A DNA stretch of 64,000 nt from Leidyana gryllorum EB-2025a (taxonomy: Eukaryota > Protista > Apicomplexa), in contig JBLWGC010000208.1 in the NCBI GenBank assembly GCA_048772705.1, positions 248,001 to 312,000 on the forward strand, written 5' to 3'. This document shows, in pieces, positions 19,896 through 33,499 of this stretch (its first letter is position 1; the number at the start of each line of letters is the position of its first letter). The notes beneath the pieces are model-generated. The model had not been told where the DNA came from, searched no databases, and saw only the letters and a program-made list of their open reading frames with translations. Made by a program: the position numbers and the translations under genes.

Positions 19896-19959
19896 CCTGA
19901 GGGCTTATTGGGGGCAAAAATTTCCGGAATTGATAGTTTGGTGATCTACAGTGAAGATA

Positions 19960-21477
19960 ATGGCGAATGCAGGGCGAGTGATAATGGTCATCGCAGAATT
20001 CGTTCTGTGGATGGCAAGCATTGGCATCGGCGCTAGGCTTGGCGGGATGTGCATAGGTTTCATGGGAGGTCTGGGTGTCGGAATATTGGTGTTTGGCTTT
20101 CAGGAGCCGGTTGGTACGATCCCTTTCGACGTGCTCCAGATCCTGATGGCTGTGGTATGTGCTACGGCGGCTCTTGAGACGGCGGGCGGTCTTAACGTAT
20201 TAGTGGACTGGTGCCGGAAATTGTTGCAGAGGCACCCGAAATGGATTACACTTGTGGCTCCCTTGGTGACGTGGATAATGACAGTCGCTAGCGGCACGGG
20301 ATACGTCTTTCTGGCACTGATGCCTGTGGTGGCGGAGGTGTCGAGGACATCTGGCGTCCGGCCTTCCAAGCCTTTGGCGGTGTCAGTCTTAGCTTCAATG
20401 TATGGAGTGATCGCGTCGCCTATCTCTGCGGCTATTGTGTATATGGCTGAACTGTTTGAAGAGTTTGACCGTCCGGTATCGTACGCCGACTTGCTGATAA
20501 TTATGATACCTTCGACACTGATTGGATTGATAGTCACGTCCGTCTGTACAATGAAAATTGGCAGCGACACGGCCTGGGCCGCAAATGTAGCCACAGGCGA
20601 TAAGGAAGCCCCCATCGATTCGCCTCTGCTCAAATCGCATTCGGCGGTGTTGAATTCGCTGAGATCTCACTCCCTCAACATCGACGATAAAGTCCCCTAC
20701 CAGAGTAATGGAGGTATCGCTGACCTCGAAGGACAGCGAGCGATTGGCACCCCGACGACAGAGCCTCGGACGAGTTTGGCCCCCTCCCTTGGCGGAGAGG
20801 GGACCACTACCAGCGGGGAAGTGTTGGTCACTCACAATGATCGTCGCGCTGTGTACGCGGTGATCATCTTCTTCTTTTCGATTGTGGTGTCCATTGTGAT
20901 CTCTATTCTATCTGCGAGCATAGACCTGAAAGCGGGGGCAGCGGATGCGATTATTATCTCTCTGTTTGCCGGAGCTGCCGCCATTGTGTGGATTTCGGGC
21001 GCGGATGCGGCTCAGATACCGAGAACTAGTGTGTTTGCGAGTGGTATGACTGCGGCAATGTGTATTTTGGGAGTGGCGTGGATGGGTGGTACCTTTATGG
21101 GTGCTCATATGAAAGATATCAATGGGCTGACAGGTGACCTACTCACATCGCAACCTTGGGTTCTCATGGTGCTCGTCTGGTTGTTCGCCAGTCTACTCTT
21201 TGGACAGGCTGCCACCTGCCGGGCCATGTTGCCCCCGGCGATGGCACTTAACCTCGGCACCTATTACGCCCTCCTCTGTTTCGCCTGTTCCGCAACTCTG
21301 TGGCTGCTCTCGAGCGCCCCAGCAATCATCGCTGCCGCACAGATGGACACAACCGGATCCTTCAGACTGGGCAAATACCTCATCGACCACTCATGTGCCC
21401 TCCCCGGTCTGATTTTCTCCGCCACCACCATTGCCACCACCGCTGGGATCGGATACTTTGTCATTGGCACAGATTGA
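19960..21477 (+). CDS. Anaerobic C4-dicarboxylate transporter, DcuA/DcuB family (bacterial type, intronless)
   Basis: Motifs IGARLGGMCIGFMGGLGV, AALETAGGL, HPKWITLVAP, GTG...PVVAEVS...RPSKPL, ASPISAA, GMTAAMCILGVAWMGGTF, QAAT and QMDTTGSFRLGKYLIDH, with about 10-12 hydrophobic segments. Confidence 0.9.
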   Translation: MANAGRVIMVIAEFVLWMASIGIGARLGGMCIGFMGGLGVGILVFGFQEPVGTIPFDVLQILMAVVCATAALETAGGLNVLVDWCRKLLQRHPKWITLVAPLVTWIMTVASGTGYVFLALMPVVAEVSRTSGVRPSKPLAVSVLASMYGVIASPISAAIVYMAELFEEFDRPVSYADLLIIMIPSTLIGLIVTSVCTMKIGSDTAWAANVATGDKEAPIDSPLLKSHSAVLNSLRSHSLNIDDKVPYQSNGGIADLEGQRAIGTPTTEPRTSLAPSLGGEGTTTSGEVLVTHNDRRAVYAVIIFFFSIVVSIVISILSASIDLKAGAADAIIISLFAGAAAIVWISGADAAQIPRTSVFASGMTAAMCILGVAWMGGTFMGAHMKDINGLTGDLLTSQPWVLMVLVWLFASLLFGQAATCRAMLPPAMALNLGTYYALLCFACSATLWLLSSAPAIIAAAQMDTTGSFRLGKYLIDHSCALPGLIFSATTIATTAGIGYFVIGTD

Positions 21478-24221: not shown

Positions 24222-25652
24222 CTAAAGTCTCGTGGCCTGATGTCGAGCGCTGATCAAAACGATTGGATTCGAATCCAACACCACCACCACTCCACTCTCC
24301 TCCACTTCGCAGTCGTCAGTACAACAACCATCTCTCAGCCAGTTTGAGACTTCTGCTTTGGAGGGCTGCGGTCTACGATCTGGTGCTCGCCCAGGAGCAC
24401 CCCTTGCGTTCAGGATGTCGAGTCTAAACGATCCCGCTGCTTCACGAGTGGAACTCACAAACGCCGCCCCCCAGTCTCTCATCACCACCTGCGCGGCCAC
24501 ATCGGGATTCCCTTCATGCCAGGTTCTCGGGAAGGCCAGGTACACTTTACCAATCTGACGTGGCTCGATGATGGAACCTGTCAGCAGCCAAAGCAAGTCC
24601 GCCACTTCAACGTTCCAAGGCGAATAGCAATCCCATTGAGTGGCCCACGTGGACTTCCTTTCCGTATTGAAGACCCGAACCATTGGGACGGAATAGCAGA
24701 AGCGGCCAGAGAAAGGTTCAGCATCCAACAGTACTGCTGTCTTGGAGATTGCATCGTACCAAACAATGTGTGCAGGCGGACGCTCCTCTGGAATCACTCG
24801 TACCTCCTCGGGCGTTTGCGACTCGGCAGCTGCAGAGACCGATTGCCATTCGATTCCCGTCTCCGAGTTGACGTCGGCAACGGAAACTCGTTCAATGGCC
24901 GTCTGCGGGTTGAGAGCTGCAAGTGTGACCCTTTCGATCACCGACTGCGGATTGGGAGCGACTGCCTCCCATTCAGTTGCCGTCTCCGAGTTGACAGCTA
25001 CAGCTGATACCCATTGCACAGCTGCTTCGAGCTGCGAGAGTCTCGCATTCACACCCGCCATCCCGTCCACAGTCGGCTCAACTCGGCCTGGCAAGCTGTT
25101 CCCCGCATCGGAGTCTGTGATCGCAAGCACACGAGCCGAAGCTTGGCCATCCTCCGGTAGCGAAGAGCTTCTATCACCTTCGAACCGATCAATACTATTT
25201 TCGCTCAACTGTGCATCACCTCCAGACTGACTTTCACCTGTTGAGCGCCCCGAACCGGTTTTCGGGGGAGTTCTGATCACCGCAATAACTTCGTCTCGTG
25301 CCGATCCTTTGGGAGTACGATAGAATAGGACTTGTGGGGAGCGTGGTGAGAATTTATGGTCATTCATGTGGGAGGATAGGCCGTCTATCACCAAAGACCG
25401 ATAGGCTCTGTGCATGGTCGGGTAGTGCATATCGAGGGTCGCGACCATATCTTGGACCGTGGCGTCATCAAGTATCGGAAGTGCTTCTGTTGGGCCACAA
25501 TCCCGTGTTATGTGGATGCTGGGGAATTCCTCCGTACGCGGCCACCATGAGAGACACCACGGAGCCGAGGCCACGTGACCGAAGAAAGTCAAAGTTTGTG
25601 GGTGGCCTCTTCGTCGAGACTTTGGTGTGGAGGGGTATAGAATACTTCTCAT
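24222..25652 (-). CDS. Hypothetical protein (476 aa) with a short internal repeat
   Basis: Uninterrupted ORF containing the repeats VNSETATEW/VNSETGIEW and NPQSVIERV/NPQTAIERV. Confidence 0.6.
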   Translation of the reverse strand: MRSILYPSTPKSRRRGHPQTLTFFGHVASAPWCLSWWPRTEEFPSIHITRDCGPTEALPILDDATVQDMVATLDMHYPTMHRAYRSLVIDGLSSHMNDHKFSPRSPQVLFYRTPKGSARDEVIAVIRTPPKTGSGRSTGESQSGGDAQLSENSIDRFEGDRSSSLPEDGQASARVLAITDSDAGNSLPGRVEPTVDGMAGVNARLSQLEAAVQWVSAVAVNSETATEWEAVAPNPQSVIERVTLAALNPQTAIERVSVADVNSETGIEWQSVSAAAESQTPEEVRVIPEERPPAHIVWYDAISKTAVLLDAEPFSGRFCYSVPMVRVFNTERKSTWATQWDCYSPWNVEVADLLWLLTGSIIEPRQIGKVYLAFPRTWHEGNPDVAAQVVMRDWGAAFVSSTREAAGSFRLDILNARGAPGRAPDRRPQPSKAEVSNWLRDGCCTDDCEVEESGVVVVLDSNPIVLISARHQATRL

Positions 25653-25988
25653 CTAACATGGACTCAGCAGCGCCCAAAATGTGTGGTCAACAGCAATGGC
25701 AATAGTACTGAGAAAATCTTGTGAGAAACTCAATGCCACCTGTAAGTGATCCAAATTTCGGCTAATTGCGTTCATGGAAACAGTGCATCAAATTCGCATG
25801 TCTCCCGGCCGCGCCCTCGAGCACACACACTCGTTCGTCTGTTGGTTCACTGAATACTGAGTCCACACGAGTGTGAAAGCAGTGCGATTAGTACCTTCCT
25901 CTTCTATGGAACATTCCAAATCAGCTGTTGATCGGCAACAGTAGCACGAAATTTGGACAAATTACGAACGGTTCAGTGCCCTGCCCAT

Positions 25989-28094
25989 ATGGACAATTTG
26001 ATTGACCAGCCATTGCTCGCCGCAACAGAGACGCAGGGATGGCTGAAGGTTCAAGAGAGCGTCCCCTTCTCTTTTGAGTATGTGCGAGACCAGACGAAGA
26101 TCTCGTGTGAAGGGCAGCGCGTGGTGGCCATCGAGGGCGAGCCAATTTTCTCTTTCGACATCCGGCACGGGTTCCGGTGGGTCGGGGATGAGAGTGTCGA
26201 CGCCTCCATCCTCGAGGACATCCAGAGGCTGCAGTGGCGAAAACATTTAGTCACTGGAGGCGTATTACTCCGGCTGGAGGGCGCCGCTGGGGCTCGGATC
26301 AGCTGCCGGCGGCTGGGTGAGATGAGCAGATACCTCAAAGAGCAACATGAAATGGTCGTGTCACTCGAGATGTTGGCCGATGGTTACGATTTCAGCGAGG
26401 CAGTGGTCTTTGTCCTTCCCGTGGAGCTACGGGCTCGCGGCTCCGACCCGCTAGAGATTATAGCCGCGATCAAGGCGGACGCTGGACTGCACATCGAAAC
26501 CGAACACAGTGATATGATGGTCCGGGCACCGATTATTTCGGAAGGGGGAGCGATCACTTTGGAGAGCGGTCACTTAATCCGGAACAGCAGCCGCATTTCA
26601 GCCTCGAGGGTTCACATTCGGGTGCCAAAGTTTGTCAACGAGGCATCGGTGACACGACACGTCAAAGTGGAGGCAGTGGGCATAGATGGGTTTTCAGCAG
26701 CAGACTCTTCCTCCTCTTCGTACCTTCGAATTGAGGCTCTGGAAGTACAAAACTATTCCTTGTTGAAGTGCACAGGCGACATGTGGATTGGCAGCAGTTG
26801 GACTTCCACTGACTTCTCGGCGGGAGAGGGACTTTCACGGGCTCGTTTGATCAACAGCGGAGCCATAGATTGTGGTCAAAATCTGGTTTTGGGGGTGGGA
26901 GAGATACAGCAGGTACAGCGATTGGATACAGCAAAGTGGAGGGGTTCCTGGGGTAGAGTTTCGGGGATAAGCGTGGATCACATGGCGCTCGCCGATCTGC
27001 CAGTGGTATCTTCAGTCTGCCCGATAGGAGCAGATTTGAGGAAGGCGCTCCAACTTGAGACCTTCGTGCGGTTCCATTCGTCGGTCAGCAACCCGATGAA
27101 ATGGTATCGAATCAGAGATGAGGTCCACCAACTCAAAGGCGATTTCGCCAAGCTGGTTCGGTTGCAGCGTGTGCCGCTCCAGCTCGAAATCAGTGAACGG
27201 AACGTCACGCGGAGAGAGTTTAACCAGAAGCTCGAGAGGCGAGAGATAACGGCAGCGCCGCAGTACTATGACATCGTGGAGCCGATGCTCGAAAACCTCA
27301 GCATCAGTGATGGGACTGGGGAGGACGAGATTGGACTGATAGCGAGGACAAAGACCAATGAGTATCTCTGGGCACCCATGAGACTCTGTAGATTTGTACC
27401 GGCCCGCTACATGCGGTGCTGTGGGAAGAGGAAGTGTTATCGCCTTAAGCCCTATGAGGAACTTGATGATTGCGACAGAGAACAGGTGGAGGAAATATTG
27501 TACGAAGAAAACTATGAGTGGCGGGACTACTACCACTTCGCCCCGGCGATACGGTCCTTAGCAGCGGTCGAAGATTACTGTCATCCCCAACCGTCCATCA
27601 GTGTTAAGGGTGCCATCTTTGACGTCTTTAAGGCGAGGAGACTGGAGTGCATTGGGGTCCCCGTACATGTTCACATTAAGACGGGATGGAAAAAGTCGAG
27701 TTGTCGCCATTATCCTCGGAGGCCGGAGGAGGTGGTCGAGAGCATTTCTGAAGTATGGTGGTACCTTTTTCTCCTCCTTTGCTGGCTGAACAGCTTGAGG
27801 GGGTTGAGTGTGTGGCACTTCCTCTTCAGGTTCTTTTTTGATCCGCTCATCACCGTGCTGCTGGCCACCGTCCTCGAGAACCTCGAATACTTGCCGTATC
27901 CATTGCTGCTGGCCGTCGTCCGCGGCACCCTCAAAGAATTCCCGTATCCCTCCCGAAGGCCCAACTTTGAGAACGCACAGAGTACCGAGTACACAATTCT
28001 GCTGCCGAAAGACCTTTTGCCGACGAAAGCTCCGCTCAGCATCGAACTCGAGGACCACTTGCCGCGATGGCACGACCACGTGTGGTACTATTGA
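25989..28094 (+). CDS. Intronless membrane protein with filamentous-haemagglutinin-like repeats (paralogue A, about 700 aa)
   Basis: Motifs GGAITLESGHLIRNSSRISASRVHI, LEVQNYSLLKCTGDMWIG and LINSGAIDCGQNLVL, plus a hydrophobic C-terminal region. Colinear with the gene at 28142-31489. Confidence 0.7.
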   Translation: MDNLIDQPLLAATETQGWLKVQESVPFSFEYVRDQTKISCEGQRVVAIEGEPIFSFDIRHGFRWVGDESVDASILEDIQRLQWRKHLVTGGVLLRLEGAAGARISCRRLGEMSRYLKEQHEMVVSLEMLADGYDFSEAVVFVLPVELRARGSDPLEIIAAIKADAGLHIETEHSDMMVRAPIISEGGAITLESGHLIRNSSRISASRVHIRVPKFVNEASVTRHVKVEAVGIDGFSAADSSSSSYLRIEALEVQNYSLLKCTGDMWIGSSWTSTDFSAGEGLSRARLINSGAIDCGQNLVLGVGEIQQVQRLDTAKWRGSWGRVSGISVDHMALADLPVVSSVCPIGADLRKALQLETFVRFHSSVSNPMKWYRIRDEVHQLKGDFAKLVRLQRVPLQLEISERNVTRREFNQKLERREITAAPQYYDIVEPMLENLSISDGTGEDEIGLIARTKTNEYLWAPMRLCRFVPARYMRCCGKRKCYRLKPYEELDDCDREQVEEILYEENYEWRDYYHFAPAIRSLAAVEDYCHPQPSISVKGAIFDVFKARRLECIGVPVHVHIKTGWKKSSCRHYPRRPEEVVESISEVWWYLFLLLCWLNSLRGLSVWHFLFRFFFDPLITVLLATVLENLEYLPYPLLLAVVRGTLKEFPYPSRRPNFENAQSTEYTILLPKDLLPTKAPLSIELEDHLPRWHDHVWYY

Positions 28095-28141
28095 GAGATT
28101 ATCATTGTGTGTCTGTTGCTTCTTCTTCAAAACCAATTTCA

Positions 28142-31100
28142 TTATTTAGCGAGACCTGGACATAAAACACCCCAAAACCGCTCATGCGCATCGGTCAATT
28201 GCTGTTTGTGCGTCCAGAGACAGATCAGAGCCGTTTCTGAGCAATGCGTTGGCTCGCGGCACATCTTGAAGGAGATGGTCGCTGGCGAGTCTCTGAGTCC
28301 CAGAGACGACGCCCCTTGCGTGCACACAGCCACCAATCGCTTGAGACCCGCAAAGCACACTGAACCCGCGACAGCGTATCGGAGATATATTGTGAAGAAG
28401 GCAGAGAGAATCGTCACTCTATCGGCTGGCCGATACTGTTGGAATTGATTATTGAAGGCCGTCTCGTTCTCCCACGAGAAACTCTGGAACGGCTTCTGAA
28501 TCAGAGACACCGCTTCGGACATTTTAAATTCCGCAGTCGGGAAGCCGAATACCATTGCCGACAGCCGCTCGACCACGTGGTGTTGCATATTCGTTAGTAT
28601 CTCTCGCAGAGCCGACAGTTCATACTTGTCCAAACACGAGGGATCGAACAGGCCGACTGACGGGGGATGTCTGGCATTCGGGCCTTTCCAACACAACCTG
28701 TGACACTGTTTCAATTGTGATCCCAAAAGTTGCCTCGATAGCGGCTTTGGGAGCAAATCTCGGAGCGGGAAGTACACCTTTCCGCCTTCGACGATATGAG
28801 TCGATGTCCGGCTAGTGACTCCGAGCTCTCCTCCGTTCGGTGTGGCGCCACTCACCAACGATGCCCTCAACGGCGCTTCCAAGCGACACAAAGACATCTC
28901 TCGAGCCGAGCTGCCACGGAGCAGTGCATAAAAGAGAGAGACGTAGAATAAGAGTCCGACCAAACCGCTCAGAAGGCCCCAAGTGGCGGTTCCAGCCAGC
29001 AGGACTAAAACAGCCCCAACTACTCCGGCCCAGAACGGTCGCATAGCTGTGGGGGCAAAGTGTGAGTCGTCTCGATGAGACTCGTTTGTACTTTGCTGCT
29101 GCGGTCTGAGGTTATGGGTGCAGCCGGAGTAGAGTTTCTCAGAACAACATCGACGCAGGGGGACCCCCACTGACGAGATGTCCACCTCTTTCATTCCCGC
29201 TATGGCTATCATCTCGTGACGCCCGTGCATGAAACCCGCTTGATGGATGAGAGGGGTATATAGGTACAGATCACCGCCAGCGAATATAGTTGGCGTCTCG
29301 CTTTGCTGCAGACTCCTCCAAAGAACCTCTCGTTGAGCTTCTGTGGCTACCTCGAAATGGGGTACCTGATACCGATACTCGTGGACTGAGTACTGTGCAT
29401 ACCAAGGCGCCACTAACTGCCTCTCCAGATGCCACCACACCTCAGCTTTTGGTCGCAGCCAACGACACAGCCCCGGACATTTGTCCGCTTTGTGGAGATT
29501 ACTGAGGACTGCTGGGACCCAGAAGGTTGTTCCTGTCGAAGTCTGGCACACATAACCGACAGTGTCACGGGGCCACATGAGTAACGCAGCGACCATCTTC
29601 TCCTCTTCCCGGGCTTTACGGTATGTTGTGTACTCTTCCAGGTATTGGTGGTACTTTACATCCGAGGCGAGGCAAACGTAGGAGCGGCCGTGACTCGGGT
29701 CGCCATTGATGGTTATCCACTCCACTGCTCCGACGGCTGGGCTTTGGCACACCTCCAACTCCTCGAGACGGTAGCCTCTGCGAGGATCGACGATGGACTT
29801 TGGGAACGAGTACATAAGACCGTCCGTTTGTTGACGGAGAGATGCCGGGACCATTGTCTCCGCTTCGCCCCGCCGCAGGTCCCTCCAGGCATCGCGCCAC
29901 AAGTTGTGGTCAAAGTGAAAGTCACTCTGAAGCCTCTCATAACAATTGGTCACTTTTTGTCCATAAAGCGCAATGTCGTGGTCGCATCCAATGTAACCCG
30001 AGTTGTAGATATGAGAGCGAATCGGTGGCGCCATTCTCTCAGCGGGGGGCATTGATACTGCCGAAGGCGGGGATCCCTCGCGGGAAGGAGACGCCTCGGG
30101 AGGCGGCGGGGGCGGCACAGGATTTCCAATTGTCAGCGATCCTTGAGAGTATATCGTAGCTTCTCTGTTGATGATGAAATCTGCCACAATCTCGATGTCG
30201 ACTGCCTTTGTGTCGCACTCGTCTTTGATAAACGCGAGGATCTCCGGGCGGGGCTCTGAGCGTTCAGTTTGCTGTTGCGCCCACGTCTGCGGATTCACCG
30301 CCGAGTTCTCAACAGTGGGCGCCCGGAAGGCTATTCGTGTTGCCCGAATACTCGAGTGATTCTTAATCCCACAGGAACTCGCGATCTTAAGTGAAGGCGT
30401 AGATATCGGTGCCTTTATGACCACAGCAGACTTCTCAGACGCCAGAGTAAACTCGCAAGGCGTATCTATCGGCTGTTCCAGGACAACATCCTGATTCGTC
30501 TTGGCAACCAGACAAACCCGCAGGCCAAAGGTCAGTGGAGGGGGATTGGGGGTCTCGAAAGTATTGAAGTGATCGGAGAGGACGTGAAGCGTCGTTAAGC
30601 GATTAGAAGCGCGATGGTAAAGGAGTTTGAGGACAGTCTGCTGGAGCTGATGAAGAGGCAGTGACAACTTGGGCTTGGCCTCCAGAATCAAGTGGTGGCC
30701 GTCGGGCAATGTTGTCCATCGGACAGACGCCCAGGACTGGTAGAAATGGTCCCGTTTGACATTGTCGGAGTCGAGGAAGTATAACGCAGTGGGGCTCACA
30801 AACGAAGCAGTGAACAGCTCGCTGTACAGATCGCTATACACAGAGAAGCTATTATGAGCACCGACGAAACACTGCGCGATAGTCGCGAGGGAGAGCACAT
30901 CAACTCGAGTGGCTTTCCGCGCCGTCAGAATCACATGAGTCCGCTTTACTCCTTCTTCATCTTCTGCGGGCTCAATACAGATCGACTCGAAAGGGTTTGG
31001 GTGCCGCATACAAGTCAGGATGGTCGTCGGTAACTCAAAACGGAGACCATTTCCCCATATGATGCCGTCTGCCTCCACAGACACTCGACCCGTCACTTCT

Positions 31101-31489
31101 TTGGGTTTCGCAGCAGCAACAAGTGACGTAACCTTTGCGATCTCCGCCAGCTCCAACTGTCGCGTCCGAGGGTGAGCTCGGAGTAGCAGGTCAAAAGAAC
31201 TCAAGTCCCCCTTAAACTCCCACTCTGCGGAATTGTACCGCTTAGTGATCAACTTGAATGAGACATCTATGTTCTCCACCCATTCGGCGGCATCGCTCTC
31301 AGTCGTCGACACCTCTCTCGCCGTTATCTCCCCAGGGGTACAGTCCGTTGACTGTTTGATTGTGTCTGCTCCAGGCAGATGTTCATCGCTCTGCAGATCT
31401 TCATCGCTCTGAGTGACTTGATGGCCGCTTAGCCATGACTTACCGCGAGTGCTGAACCTATGTGTCTTCCACATCTCGTTGTCGATCAT
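28142..31489 (-). CDS. Intronless membrane protein with filamentous-haemagglutinin/CdiA-like repeats (paralogue B, about 1115 aa)
   Basis: Motifs IKNHSSIRATRIAF, FIINREATIYSQGSLTIG, IYNSGYIGCDHDIALYGQKVTN and PTIFAGGDLYL, plus a TM hairpin FWAGVVGAVLVLLAG...LLFYVSLFYALL. Confidence 0.75.
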   Translation of the reverse strand: MIDNEMWKTHRFSTRGKSWLSGHQVTQSDEDLQSDEHLPGADTIKQSTDCTPGEITAREVSTTESDAAEWVENIDVSFKLITKRYNSAEWEFKGDLSSFDLLLRAHPRTRQLELAEIAKVTSLVAAAKPKEVTGRVSVEADGIIWGNGLRFELPTTILTCMRHPNPFESICIEPAEDEEGVKRTHVILTARKATRVDVLSLATIAQCFVGAHNSFSVYSDLYSELFTASFVSPTALYFLDSDNVKRDHFYQSWASVRWTTLPDGHHLILEAKPKLSLPLHQLQQTVLKLLYHRASNRLTTLHVLSDHFNTFETPNPPPLTFGLRVCLVAKTNQDVVLEQPIDTPCEFTLASEKSAVVIKAPISTPSLKIASSCGIKNHSSIRATRIAFRAPTVENSAVNPQTWAQQQTERSEPRPEILAFIKDECDTKAVDIEIVADFIINREATIYSQGSLTIGNPVPPPPPPEASPSREGSPPSAVSMPPAERMAPPIRSHIYNSGYIGCDHDIALYGQKVTNCYERLQSDFHFDHNLWRDAWRDLRRGEAETMVPASLRQQTDGLMYSFPKSIVDPRRGYRLEELEVCQSPAVGAVEWITINGDPSHGRSYVCLASDVKYHQYLEEYTTYRKAREEEKMVAALLMWPRDTVGYVCQTSTGTTFWVPAVLSNLHKADKCPGLCRWLRPKAEVWWHLERQLVAPWYAQYSVHEYRYQVPHFEVATEAQREVLWRSLQQSETPTIFAGGDLYLYTPLIHQAGFMHGRHEMIAIAGMKEVDISSVGVPLRRCCSEKLYSGCTHNLRPQQQSTNESHRDDSHFAPTAMRPFWAGVVGAVLVLLAGTATWGLLSGLVGLLFYVSLFYALLRGSSAREMSLCRLEAPLRASLVSGATPNGGELGVTSRTSTHIVEGGKVYFPLRDLLPKPLSRQLLGSQLKQCHRLCWKGPNARHPPSVGLFDPSCLDKYELSALREILTNMQHHVVERLSAMVFGFPTAEFKMSEAVSLIQKPFQSFSWENETAFNNQFQQYRPADRVTILSAFFTIYLRYAVAGSVCFAGLKRLVAVCTQGASSLGLRDSPATISFKMCREPTHCSETALICLWTHKQQLTDAHERFWGVLCPGLAK

Positions 31490-31915
31490 CACTTCAGGGG
31501 TCAATAGTTGCGGAAAATAAAACTTGATGACGAGATTGGCCGTACTTTAAAAACTAACACTCTTAAAGCCTTCAAGCCCAAAGGCGCGCCAAACTGTCTC
31601 CAATCCCAAGATGGCAACGTAAGAACACTGATAGCCTCAACTGTGGCTGCAACTGATATATCGACGCCGAGATCCCAATAGTTGCCGTGCACACCTCCCC
31701 CCCGGCATGACATATCACACACACACACCCCCTCCCCGAACCCACGGACTCATTCTCTGTGACCCATCCACAGTGGCCTAATCGAAAGTCTCACTACACA
31801 CGTCCACCTGAGACTACAGCAACATAAATCGAATGACGGGATTGAAGTGACTTGATCGCGTTGAACAGTGGTTCTTACAATGTGTGTTGTATCTATCCCC
31901 TCGATCTGGAATTTG

Positions 31916-33499
31916 TCAGAAGAAAATGGCCACAGACAGAGACCAAATTAAGGGAGGAGTTGTGCTATCTATCGGTTTGGGTGGAAACAGTGGCGAGACA
32001 TTGGACGACTTCTTCCCACGAGTCGCCGAGCGCCTTGCAGCGATTCGCAAACTTAGGCGTCTGACTTTCTGACGCAAGCGCTCGCGGCGCCCCATCGAAC
32101 AGTCTCCTTGTGAAACGGGAAGGAGGAGAGCTTCAGCGATTGCTCGAGTGGCCGTCTCACTCGATGGAATGAGTGTGATCTCCCCCAAGGGCCCATCGAG
32201 TAGAGATCCTCCCAACCCGCAACTGAGAAGATTGATCATGTCTTTGGCGCCTTCAATGAGAACGAATTCAAGAGACCTCTCCTGGCGATAGTAACGGTAC
32301 ATTCCTTTGCCAACGATGAAAAGGAGATGGCACCCCAATACATAGGGGAAGGCTGCCGATGAGATGACAGACGCCGCCAGACACACTTCAACGCCCCCGG
32401 GAAACAGAGATAAGGTGAATTCGAGGGCAGTGACAGCTGTATGAACTGTGGCTGCCTGAATCATCCCACGCTTGAAACTCTTACTTACACTACTCCAATC
32501 GAATGTGGCGTCTCGGGTGAGAACCAGTTGCTGCTGATTCGCGCCGGGCCTCAACAAAGGACCGTTGGAGACTGATGGACTGTCGTGCACATTTCCGAGT
32601 GTTGGAGAGCGACTGTATGATATGGCCAGCGCCGCTTCCACCAAAGGGCACCCGTTCAGATCGTGGTGACCTCCACCGCTGGAAGGTATCTCTTGGCCCC
32701 GGTCTCCGCTGCCTACACTCGAGTTCTTGGAACTCGGCATTCTGACCCTCTCGAACCACTTTTGTGGCGTCGTTCGCGACGTCACAGTGTCGTCTGTCAG
32801 GACGCAGAGCTCCGACTTTTCGGATGGGCAGTGAGTAACTGTGTGGCCGGGCGGTCTGGCATCCACCGAACTGACGCGACCACCAGCGAGGAGTGACCTG
32901 TGTCGACATTGATCGACGGCACTCTTGAGCCTTCCAGCGCCACTCGATCGGCACTTTCGTCGCCTGTGGCCCCTCGAGTTCGATATACTCCCCGCCGACT
33001 CGTCGTCAAATGAGAGTACTATAGTTTCTAAGCAGAGGGAGAGTTGGATCCTCGGGCTTTCTAACGCCTTTATCCGGAAACGCCGAGTGGGAGGAGAGAG
33101 CATTGCCAGCGGCGTTTCACCGTCGCTCGGAGAGGAGATGCATTGGGCTCGAAGTGCAACTGGAGAGGTGGGCCGAAGTATTGGTCTTCTGTCCTGGTAG
33201 GCTAAGAGGGCATCGTTGTCAATGTGTGAGTTGGAGGGGGTATGGGATGGCGTGGGTTCGTTGAAACAGTGAATAATAACGGAGAGACGGTCGTCGAACA
33301 GACGGTCAGCGTAAGCGAGTGATCCCTGGGGTGGCCAGGGAGTGTGGATTCGCACAGAAGTAGACTTGGTGGGTGTTCTGGTATCGTCGGTCGCATAGAG
33401 TTTGGGTTTGGAATGAGACAGCTCAGCCGCCGCCTGTAATATGGGGTGGCGGGAGTTGTGCGGCCGTGATGAATGGATTGATGATCGAGTAGGCACCAT
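31916..33499 (-). CDS. Hypothetical protein (527 aa) with a disordered N-terminus and hydrophobic C-terminal helices
   Basis: Long uninterrupted ORF with hydrophobic segments such as VCLAASVISSAAFPYVLGCHLLFIVG. Confidence 0.55.
   Translation of the reverse strand: MVPTRSSIHSSRPHNSRHPILQAAAELSHSKPKLYATDDTRTPTKSTSVRIHTPWPPQGSLAYADRLFDDRLSVIIHCFNEPTPSHTPSNSHIDNDALLAYQDRRPILRPTSPVALRAQCISSPSDGETPLAMLSPPTRRFRIKALESPRIQLSLCLETIVLSFDDESAGSISNSRGHRRRKCRSSGAGRLKSAVDQCRHRSLLAGGRVSSVDARPPGHTVTHCPSEKSELCVLTDDTVTSRTTPQKWFERVRMPSSKNSSVGSGDRGQEIPSSGGGHHDLNGCPLVEAALAISYSRSPTLGNVHDSPSVSNGPLLRPGANQQQLVLTRDATFDWSSVSKSFKRGMIQAATVHTAVTALEFTLSLFPGGVEVCLAASVISSAAFPYVLGCHLLFIVGKGMYRYYRQERSLEFVLIEGAKDMINLLSCGLGGSLLDGPLGEITLIPSSETATRAIAEALLLPVSQGDCSMGRRERLRQKVRRLSLRIAARRSATRGKKSSNVSPLFPPKPIDSTTPPLIWSLSVAIFF

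Follow-up and report, generated by a model that had tools for sequence, protein, structure and literature searches.

What are two genes whose products are predicted to resemble bacterial filamentous haemagglutinin (FHA) doing on a gregarine chromosome? FHA/TpsA-type β-helices are considered a hallmark of Gram-negative secretion, and the question is raised by a pair of neighbouring genes, here called A and B, in the apicomplexan Leidyana gryllorum EB-2025a. The stretch analysed, referred to as the window, covers 64,000 nucleotides (C208:248001-312000 of a 15.5-Mb assembly). The explanation that we favour, with somewhat better than even confidence, is that A and B are intact, extremely diverged members of a multigene family, seen in this gregarine genome alone, built on an FHA/TpsA-type helix, for which bacterial descent and a role as a binding stalk may be inferred. 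The initial annotation had described a tail-to-tail pair with stop codons 47 nt apart, and the coordinates of the open reading frames (ORFs) agree:

25953..28094, plus strand: open frame of gene A, intact (first ATG 25989; coding sequence 25989..28094; 701 aa including the stop)
28095..28141, unstranded: spacer of 47 nt between the convergent stop codons (ORF coordinates and sequence)
28142..31504, minus strand: open frame of gene B, intact (first ATG 31489; coding sequence 28142..31489; 1115 aa including the stop)

A diverged multigene family

A and B had been presented as diverged paralogues with colinear motif blocks, and every peptide quoted in support was located, in identical order in the two proteins (at residues 178, 253, 287, 554 and 675 of A, and 358, 439, 494, 773 and 911 of B). 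The paralogy itself holds, though weakly, on a BLASTP match (E 5e-6 over ~100 aa at 26% identity) and on leave-one-out hidden Markov models (HMMs). A model built from the five other long members of the family aligned A 141-525 colinearly (23.9 bits, E 3.4e-6 in a 10,000-protein search space), and the equivalent model for B scored 254.7 bits (E 6.5e-76). With an overall identity of ~20%, the two are very diverged paralogues.

Used as query against the assembly in all six frames, B recovered four further long intact ORFs, all on contig C104: C1 (1248 aa), C2 (1473 aa), C3 (1151 aa) and D (1105 aa). C2 is arranged head-to-head with C1 and tail-to-tail with C3, the latter in the manner of A and B. 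Searching the genome with a profile of the core returned exactly six full-length matches (A, B, C1, C2, C3 and D). Pairwise identity within this set is 17-33%, with the exception of C1/C3 (49%), and 20 columns of alignment A3 are invariant across all six long proteins. The shared core consists of rungs with invariant N/N/D/N/I/N-G positions, an insert carrying W, F, G..FW, C, P, Y and P, and then C-x-H; all six proteins are cysteine-rich, with 14-37 Cys each. Five shorter genes (474-672 aa; two on contig C204 and three on C140) carry the ~290-aa N-terminal module and the first rungs (HMM E 1e-22 to 1e-42). The family has at least eleven genes, six long and five short, that share the N-terminal module.

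Four of the five shorter genes go on to repeat the first ~90 residues of the N-terminal module, and two short genes on C140 (about 307.4-311.7 kb, on the plus and minus strands) form a tail-to-tail pair of their own, with stop codons about 0.4 kb apart. Gene C2 (C104:1118027-1122445) has an extra N-terminal block of ~300 aa, around C104:1118792-1119028, in which the first rungs occur a second time (E 1.9e-11 to core positions 2-77).

A simple local duplication of A and B finds no support now that the pair proves to belong to a family of six long and five short genes. The tree, in which both sit on long branches, does not settle whether the two are sisters. A hint that they may be sister genes comes from the DLLP motif previously noted in both, which proved to be part of a longer pattern, [KR]DLLP followed by one to three residues and PLS (KDLLPTKAPLS in A, RDLLPKPLS in B); it lies ~50 aa beyond the hydrophobic hairpin, and a regular-expression search over the six long paralogues found it in these two alone.

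Predicted fold and domain layout

A region of B spanning residues 300-812 was modelled with AlphaFold2 from a six-sequence alignment (mean predicted local distance difference test score, pLDDT, 69). The model has about 8-9 rungs broken by a ~195-aa α/β domain, and is most regular at B 319-399, where pLDDT reaches 84-93 and short strands follow a solenoid pattern. The VIA-align structure search, which is independent of Foldseek, compared the model with 48,161 chains, and the six best matches were all TpsA proteins:

4i84, HxuA secretion domain: Z 17.6, root-mean-square deviation (rmsd) 2.8 Å over 189 aa
4rt6, HxuA: Z 16.6, rmsd 3.6 Å over 199 aa
8cpk, EtpA secretion domain: Z 15.9, rmsd 3.5 Å over 201 aa
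2odl, HMW1 secretion domain: Z 15.8, rmsd 5.3 Å over 188 aa
8vba, EtpA: Z 15.6, rmsd 3.1 Å over 199 aa
1rwr, FHA secretion domain: Z 13.7, rmsd 3.4 Å over 185 aa

The best β-helix outside the TpsA group scored Z 13.3, and generic right-handed β-helices (adhesins, autotransporters, tailspikes and pectate lyases) fell at Z 10-13.3 with mostly lower identity; in the structural alignments identity was 11-18% for TpsA proteins, 4-10% for most other β-helices and 16% for Awp1. Left-handed helices attained similar Z only at rmsd 12-16 Å, which indicates that the B model is right-handed. A shape search of the ESM Atlas was led by clusters of two-partner secretion (TPS) and Fil_haemagg proteins, one Fil_haemagg cluster aligning with TM-score 0.78 by target and rmsd 2.3 Å over 181 aa. 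The language-model (ESM) features of B 319-806 were also nearest to Fil_haemagg clusters (0.91), a result that we treat as a lead only.

The same relationship was approached through sequence. The family profile was run with hmmsearch against 1.84 billion (1.84e9) representative proteins at E<=1e-3, and just three matches were returned (E 7.4e-6, 1.8e-4 and 5.7e-4), all of them bacterial TpsA exoproteins. A TPS domain and Fil_haemagg repeats occur in each of them, and P0001, which is CdiA-like, has a deaminase toxin tip as well. The matches are confined to the rung region, at profile positions ~250-470. The three native proteins score 34-40 bits, whereas their reversed, shuffled and 10-aa block-shuffled versions did not exceed 2.2 bits; composition is therefore not the cause of the matches.

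Three partly independent lines, namely the profile search, the AlphaFold model with its structure search and the language-model features, thus point to an FHA/TpsA-type helix, and the prediction that the central region of B is a right-handed β-helix of this type is well supported. The β-helix claimed by the initial annotation was in this way upheld for B by the model and its TpsA matches; in A, the most diverged and shortest long member, the fold would follow from alignment to the modelled B only. The parts of B are as follows:

30536..31309, minus strand: B residues 61-318, family-specific N-terminal domain of two predicted α/β modules (HMM, AlphaFold model)
29930..30535, minus strand: B residues 319-520, predicted right-handed FHA/TpsA-type rungs (model rungs B 319-399, 416-455 and 493-515; AlphaFold, VIA-align, ESM Atlas, profile matches)
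30020..30124, minus strand: B residues 456-490, proline-rich disordered loop between rungs (sequence; pLDDT <50 at model residues 160-188)
29303..29887, minus strand: B residues 535-729, predicted α/β domain (~195 aa) between rungs (model residues 236-430, invariant columns)
29207..29290, minus strand: B residues 734-761, rungs restarting past the insert (PTIFAGGDLYLY...; short strands at model residues 435-462; TpsA structural alignments reach model residue about 475)
29105..29173, minus strand: B residues 773-795, GVPL... C-x-H motif (C790 and H792 invariant in all six long paralogues, alignment A1)
28919..29026, minus strand: B residues 822-857, two adjacent strongly hydrophobic helices, probable membrane hairpin (Kyte-Doolittle 1.96 and 2.17)
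28145..28912, minus strand: B residues 860-1115, C-terminal domain conserved in B, C1, C2, C3 and D, with the motif CF[VA]GLKRL (alignments A1 and A2)
28736-28762, minus strand: RDLLPKPLS at the start of the C-terminal domain (sequence)

The N-terminal domain of B was modelled with pLDDT 66 as two similar β-β-β-α-β modules rather than a β-helix; a weak second BLASTP match, between A 124-179 and B 136-191, is in keeping with two such modules. This model had no significant Foldseek match in the PDB and a best structural Z of 6.1, which is background; its possible identity as a TPS domain was rejected on the α/β model and that score. The inserted domain has conserved W, F, G-x-x-F-W, C, P, Y and P positions (alignment A3), and its pLDDT is mostly 71-90 per 10-residue block, with lower values of about 45-66 at its beginning and at some other points. 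Part of it (model residues 286-373) resembles an SH3-like small barrel through weak structural matches (Z 4-5); no relative was found among the searched sequences or solved structures, and its language-model neighbours were sub-threshold (0.88). Pfam and PDB searches gave no match for the C-terminal domain. The corresponding parts of A are:

26013..26405, plus strand: A residues 9-139, truncated copy (first half only) of the family N-terminal module (alignments A1 and A4)
26406..26918, plus strand: A residues about 140-310, putative β-helix rung region with the invariant Asn positions common to all paralogues (alignment A3, BLASTP block against B)
26919..27608, plus strand: A residues about 311-540, diverged domain inserted in the putative β-helix (leave-one-out HMM to A 525, alignment A3)
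27756..27875, plus strand: A residues 590-629, hydrophobic segments, a possible but marginal membrane hairpin (Kyte-Doolittle 19-residue windows 1.5-1.9, with R and D inside)
28008..28040, plus strand: A residues 674-684, KDLLPTKAPLS, common to B alone (regular expression over six paralogues)

A retains just the beginning of the C-terminal domain seen in B, C1, C2, C3 and D (alignments A1 and A2).

Origin and role of the proteins

How close the family stands to its bacterial counterparts depends on what accompanies the helix. TpsA proteins (FHA/FhaB, HxuA, HMW1 and EtpA) share with A and B a right-handed parallel β-helix with rungs of ~20 residues and Asn-rich turns, and they provide both the best structural matches (Z 13.7-17.6, rmsd 2.8-5.3 Å) and the sole profile matches of the family; some of them likewise bear extra-helical elements. 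In contrast to TpsA proteins, the gregarine proteins lack a TPS domain, an ESPR or Sec signal and a TpsB partner gene, their helix has about 8-9 rungs rather than hundreds of repeat residues, and they add N-terminal α/β modules, the 195-aa insert, a hydrophobic hairpin and a C-terminal domain, all encoded on a eukaryotic chromosome. CdiA also combines an FHA-type helix with a non-repeat domain that interrupts the repeats, but the A/B family lacks the VENN/pretoxin motif, the toxin domain and the immunity gene. In CdiA the receptor-binding domain is reportedly followed by a YP domain and not by further FHA-1 rungs, whereas in the B model the helix resumes past the insert. Among eukaryotic proteins, the A-domains of Candida glabrata Awp1 and Awp3b are likewise right-handed β-helices (VIA-align Z 12.8-13.2); they score below TpsA and are related to A and B neither in sequence nor in domains. 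Awp1 and Awp3b are secreted, glycosylphosphatidylinositol-anchored wall proteins with signal peptides.

The absences in this comparison were noted from the outset, and the lack of a TPS domain, toxin tip and signal peptide was confirmed with Pfam and hydropathy. The six long proteins contain no TPS domain (PF05860) at E<=10, no VENN motif, no toxin domain by Pfam and no signal peptide; A and B have no N-terminal signal-like hydrophobic segment, and no candidate upstream exon is visible in the sequence before either gene. The flanking ORFs are unrelated orphans, and no immunity gene was seen. Genome-wide searches for the TPS domain, Fil_haemagg_2 and the ShlB-type TpsB transporter (PF03865) were blank, an absence that is soft in that the control genomes were silent too. 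Because a TPS domain, signal peptide, TpsB partner, VENN motif and toxin tip were not found, A and B are not members of TpsA or CdiA: they share the TpsA/CdiA scaffold yet belong to neither family. A specific kinship to CdiA, with a receptor-binding domain bracketed by FHA-1 repeats, had been suggested and finds no support, as there is no VENN motif or toxin, no YP-like domain was recognised and the insert has no detectable relative.

The FHA-like genes of this genome have diverged to different degrees. An intronless 448-aa ORF at C7:410-1756 (minus strand) matches Pfam Fil_haemagg PF05594 (26.1 bits, E 1.4e-5); it has paralogues on contigs C33 and C133, and C71, C215 and C62 hold short pieces, 60-80% identical, that appear to be decayed copies. 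As in A and B, the ORFs of this family are intronless, encode haemagglutinin-type rungs and carry no export signals. The family differs in that the C7 gene passes the Pfam Fil_haemagg threshold and A and B do not, and in that its proteins lack the N-terminal module, insert and C-terminal domain of the A/B family. Alignment of the C7-like family with the A/B rung region by hhalign gave 44% probability (E 2.3e-4, 114 columns).

Taken together, the data suggest the following architecture for a long protein: a family-specific N-terminal pair of α/β modules, then a short, rigid, right-handed parallel β-helix of about 8-9 rungs and FHA/TpsA type, a ~195-aa α/β domain projecting between two of the rungs and, after the Cys/His motif, a hairpin of hydrophobic segments (evident in B but borderline in A, C1 and C3) and the C-terminal domain. 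The helix module may have descended from a bacterial two-partner-secretion exoprotein acquired long ago, its TPS domain and toxin end having been lost or replaced; for this ancestry we rate the chances as even or marginally better. Horizontal acquisition, as first proposed, is in this sense plausible, the similarity behind it being of the fold and of marginal profile scores. The protein could then serve as a membrane- or pellicle-associated stalk presenting a fast-evolving inserted domain for binding, in adhesion or recognition, a stalk-and-head design like that of bacterial β-helix adhesins; by analogy with these the role is possible, and we propose it tentatively. The N-terminal, inserted and C-terminal parts around the scaffold are new, so that a bacterial part may have found a second use in a eukaryote.

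Several results weigh against this interpretation. Pfam and NCBIfam gave no match in A or B or in the other four long members, also with the threshold relaxed to E 10; the sole signal, a BimA match at E 0.08, was judged meaningless, and neither A nor B contains PF05594 or PF13332 repeats above the Pfam threshold. The search of haemagglutinin and CdiA profiles envisaged by the initial annotation was therefore negative in these databases, and the family profile supplied only the three marginal TpsA matches. Each of these is the sum of 5-10 repeats of 5-16 bits, and since the repeats of P0001 are near-identical copies its hmmsearch E-value overstates their independence; a direct hhalign comparison of the core with the P0001 repeat was weak (7.7% probability, 20% identity, 130 columns). 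The AlphaFold models, of B only, were built on shallow alignments (6 and 10 sequences; mean pLDDT 69 and 66), and the predicted structure called for earlier, which did contain a right-handed β-helix, drew a blank with Foldseek against the PDB for B 300-812. Word-seeded homology searches with gene A, the B core and the C7 gene were blank, as was a scan of metagenome contigs with B, and a sequence-profile search of the PDB gave chance matches alone (E 0.85 or worse). No relatives were found in other eukaryotes or metagenomes, hence there is no phylogeny with which to test gene transfer. Of the genome-wide family count and the bacterial phylogeny that had been proposed together, the count was obtained and the phylogeny was not feasible at such divergence, since A and B are too dissimilar from bacterial CdiA/FhaB to be aligned with them in a meaningful way. 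Finally, the lack of a signal peptide and the uneven occurrence of the hairpin within the family make a surface location uncertain. Kyte-Doolittle profiles show a strong hairpin in B only (2.0-2.2); the values for A, C1 and C3 are marginal, and C2 and D lack a hydrophobic segment at this place. The transmembrane hairpin once attributed to both genes is thus convincing in B and marginal in A (1.5-1.9, with charged residues inside), and re-anchoring by transmembrane helices is not supported as a feature of the family, B alone being convincing.

The absence of a Pfam match, the insignificant scores of individual repeats and the low hhalign probability would all fit the view that the family is a lineage-specific invention whose likeness to TpsA, in ~20-residue rungs with Asn at the turns, arose by convergence without bacterial ancestry. 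The N-terminal, inserted and C-terminal domains, which have no bacterial or other relatives, and a GC content equal to that of the surrounding genome suit the same view. We consider convergence a credible but less probable account: the only three matches in 1.84e9 proteins are all TpsA, with no other common β-helix family among them, and are lost on scrambling; TpsA structures are ahead by >2 Z units in the fold search, at 11-18% identity; and a Fil_haemagg repeat of Pfam significance persists in the second family of the genome, which forms a bridge to A and B. A more sceptical explanation still, that the ORFs are non-functional (decaying copies or assembly artefacts) or bacterial contamination, could appeal to the orphan genes on both flanks. 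It is very improbable, given that six uninterrupted ORFs of 701-1473 codons hold the same invariant positions at ~20% identity, that paralogues lie on other large contigs, that the pair has eukaryotic neighbours and uniform GC around it, and that the closest bacterial proteins are marginal repeat matches. Contamination in particular was ruled out by the neighbours, the GC content and the dispersed paralogues.

A separate alternative concerns function and not descent. The absence of a signal peptide and the non-conserved hairpin leave a cytosolic or cortex-associated scaffold, for example of the pellicle or inner membrane complex, as a serious rival, in which the β-helix would be a rigid spacer and not an exposed adhesin. 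No upstream exon is evident to supply a missing signal, a hairpin after ~820 residues would put both large ends in the cytosol, and the hairpin position is not hydrophobic in C2 and D. Set against this are the known proteins of this fold, which are extracellular, the high cysteine content of all six proteins, and the extreme divergence of the paralogues (only C1/C3 exceeding 33% identity) with a variable insert and a proline-rich loop, which we regard as more typical of interface proteins; on balance the scaffold seems less likely than not. Returning to the preferred explanation, of a diverged family on an FHA/TpsA-type helix, its boldest extension would be that an ancestral gregarine took in a bacterial exoprotein of TpsA/CdiA type and remodelled it as a eukaryotic, membrane-anchored, fast-diversifying recognition or adhesion system. 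New N-terminal modules and, within the helix, a new binding domain would have been added, and the genes would have multiplied into tail-to-tail pairs (A/B, C2/C3 and the pair on C140) that may act together. This is a speculative scenario with a small chance of being right. If true, such capture and rebuilding would resemble the way in which animal teneurins arose from bacterial YD-repeat toxins.

A literature search found no paper tying gregarines to filamentous haemagglutinin or describing such a gregarine family. A eukaryotic family of at least eleven genes that reuses the FHA/TpsA scaffold, with novel domains around and inside it, would introduce candidate surface or cortex proteins of a new class into apicomplexan biology, and would be a concrete case of a domesticated bacterial structural module. 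It would also serve as a test bed for how well a β-helix stalk tolerates a large domain between its rungs.

Neighbourhood of the pair

GC content across the window is even (0.50-0.55), with no step at the A/B locus. Those genes of the window that can be named fit a eukaryote (peptidase C54/ATG4, an M16 peptidase and a GT2 glycosyltransferase), with the addition of a bacterial-type Dcu transporter. Long ORFs of 476 and 527 aa lie on either side of A and B, at window positions 24222-25652 and 31916-33499, both on the minus strand. Neither belongs to a Pfam family or shows similarity to the A/B family or to the neighbours of its paralogues; the second has hydrophobic segments close to its C-terminus. 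The Dcu gene, 4.5 kb upstream of the pair at window positions 19951-21477 on the plus strand, encodes an intact anaerobic C4-dicarboxylate transporter of the DcuA/DcuB type (Pfam E 2.4e-97).

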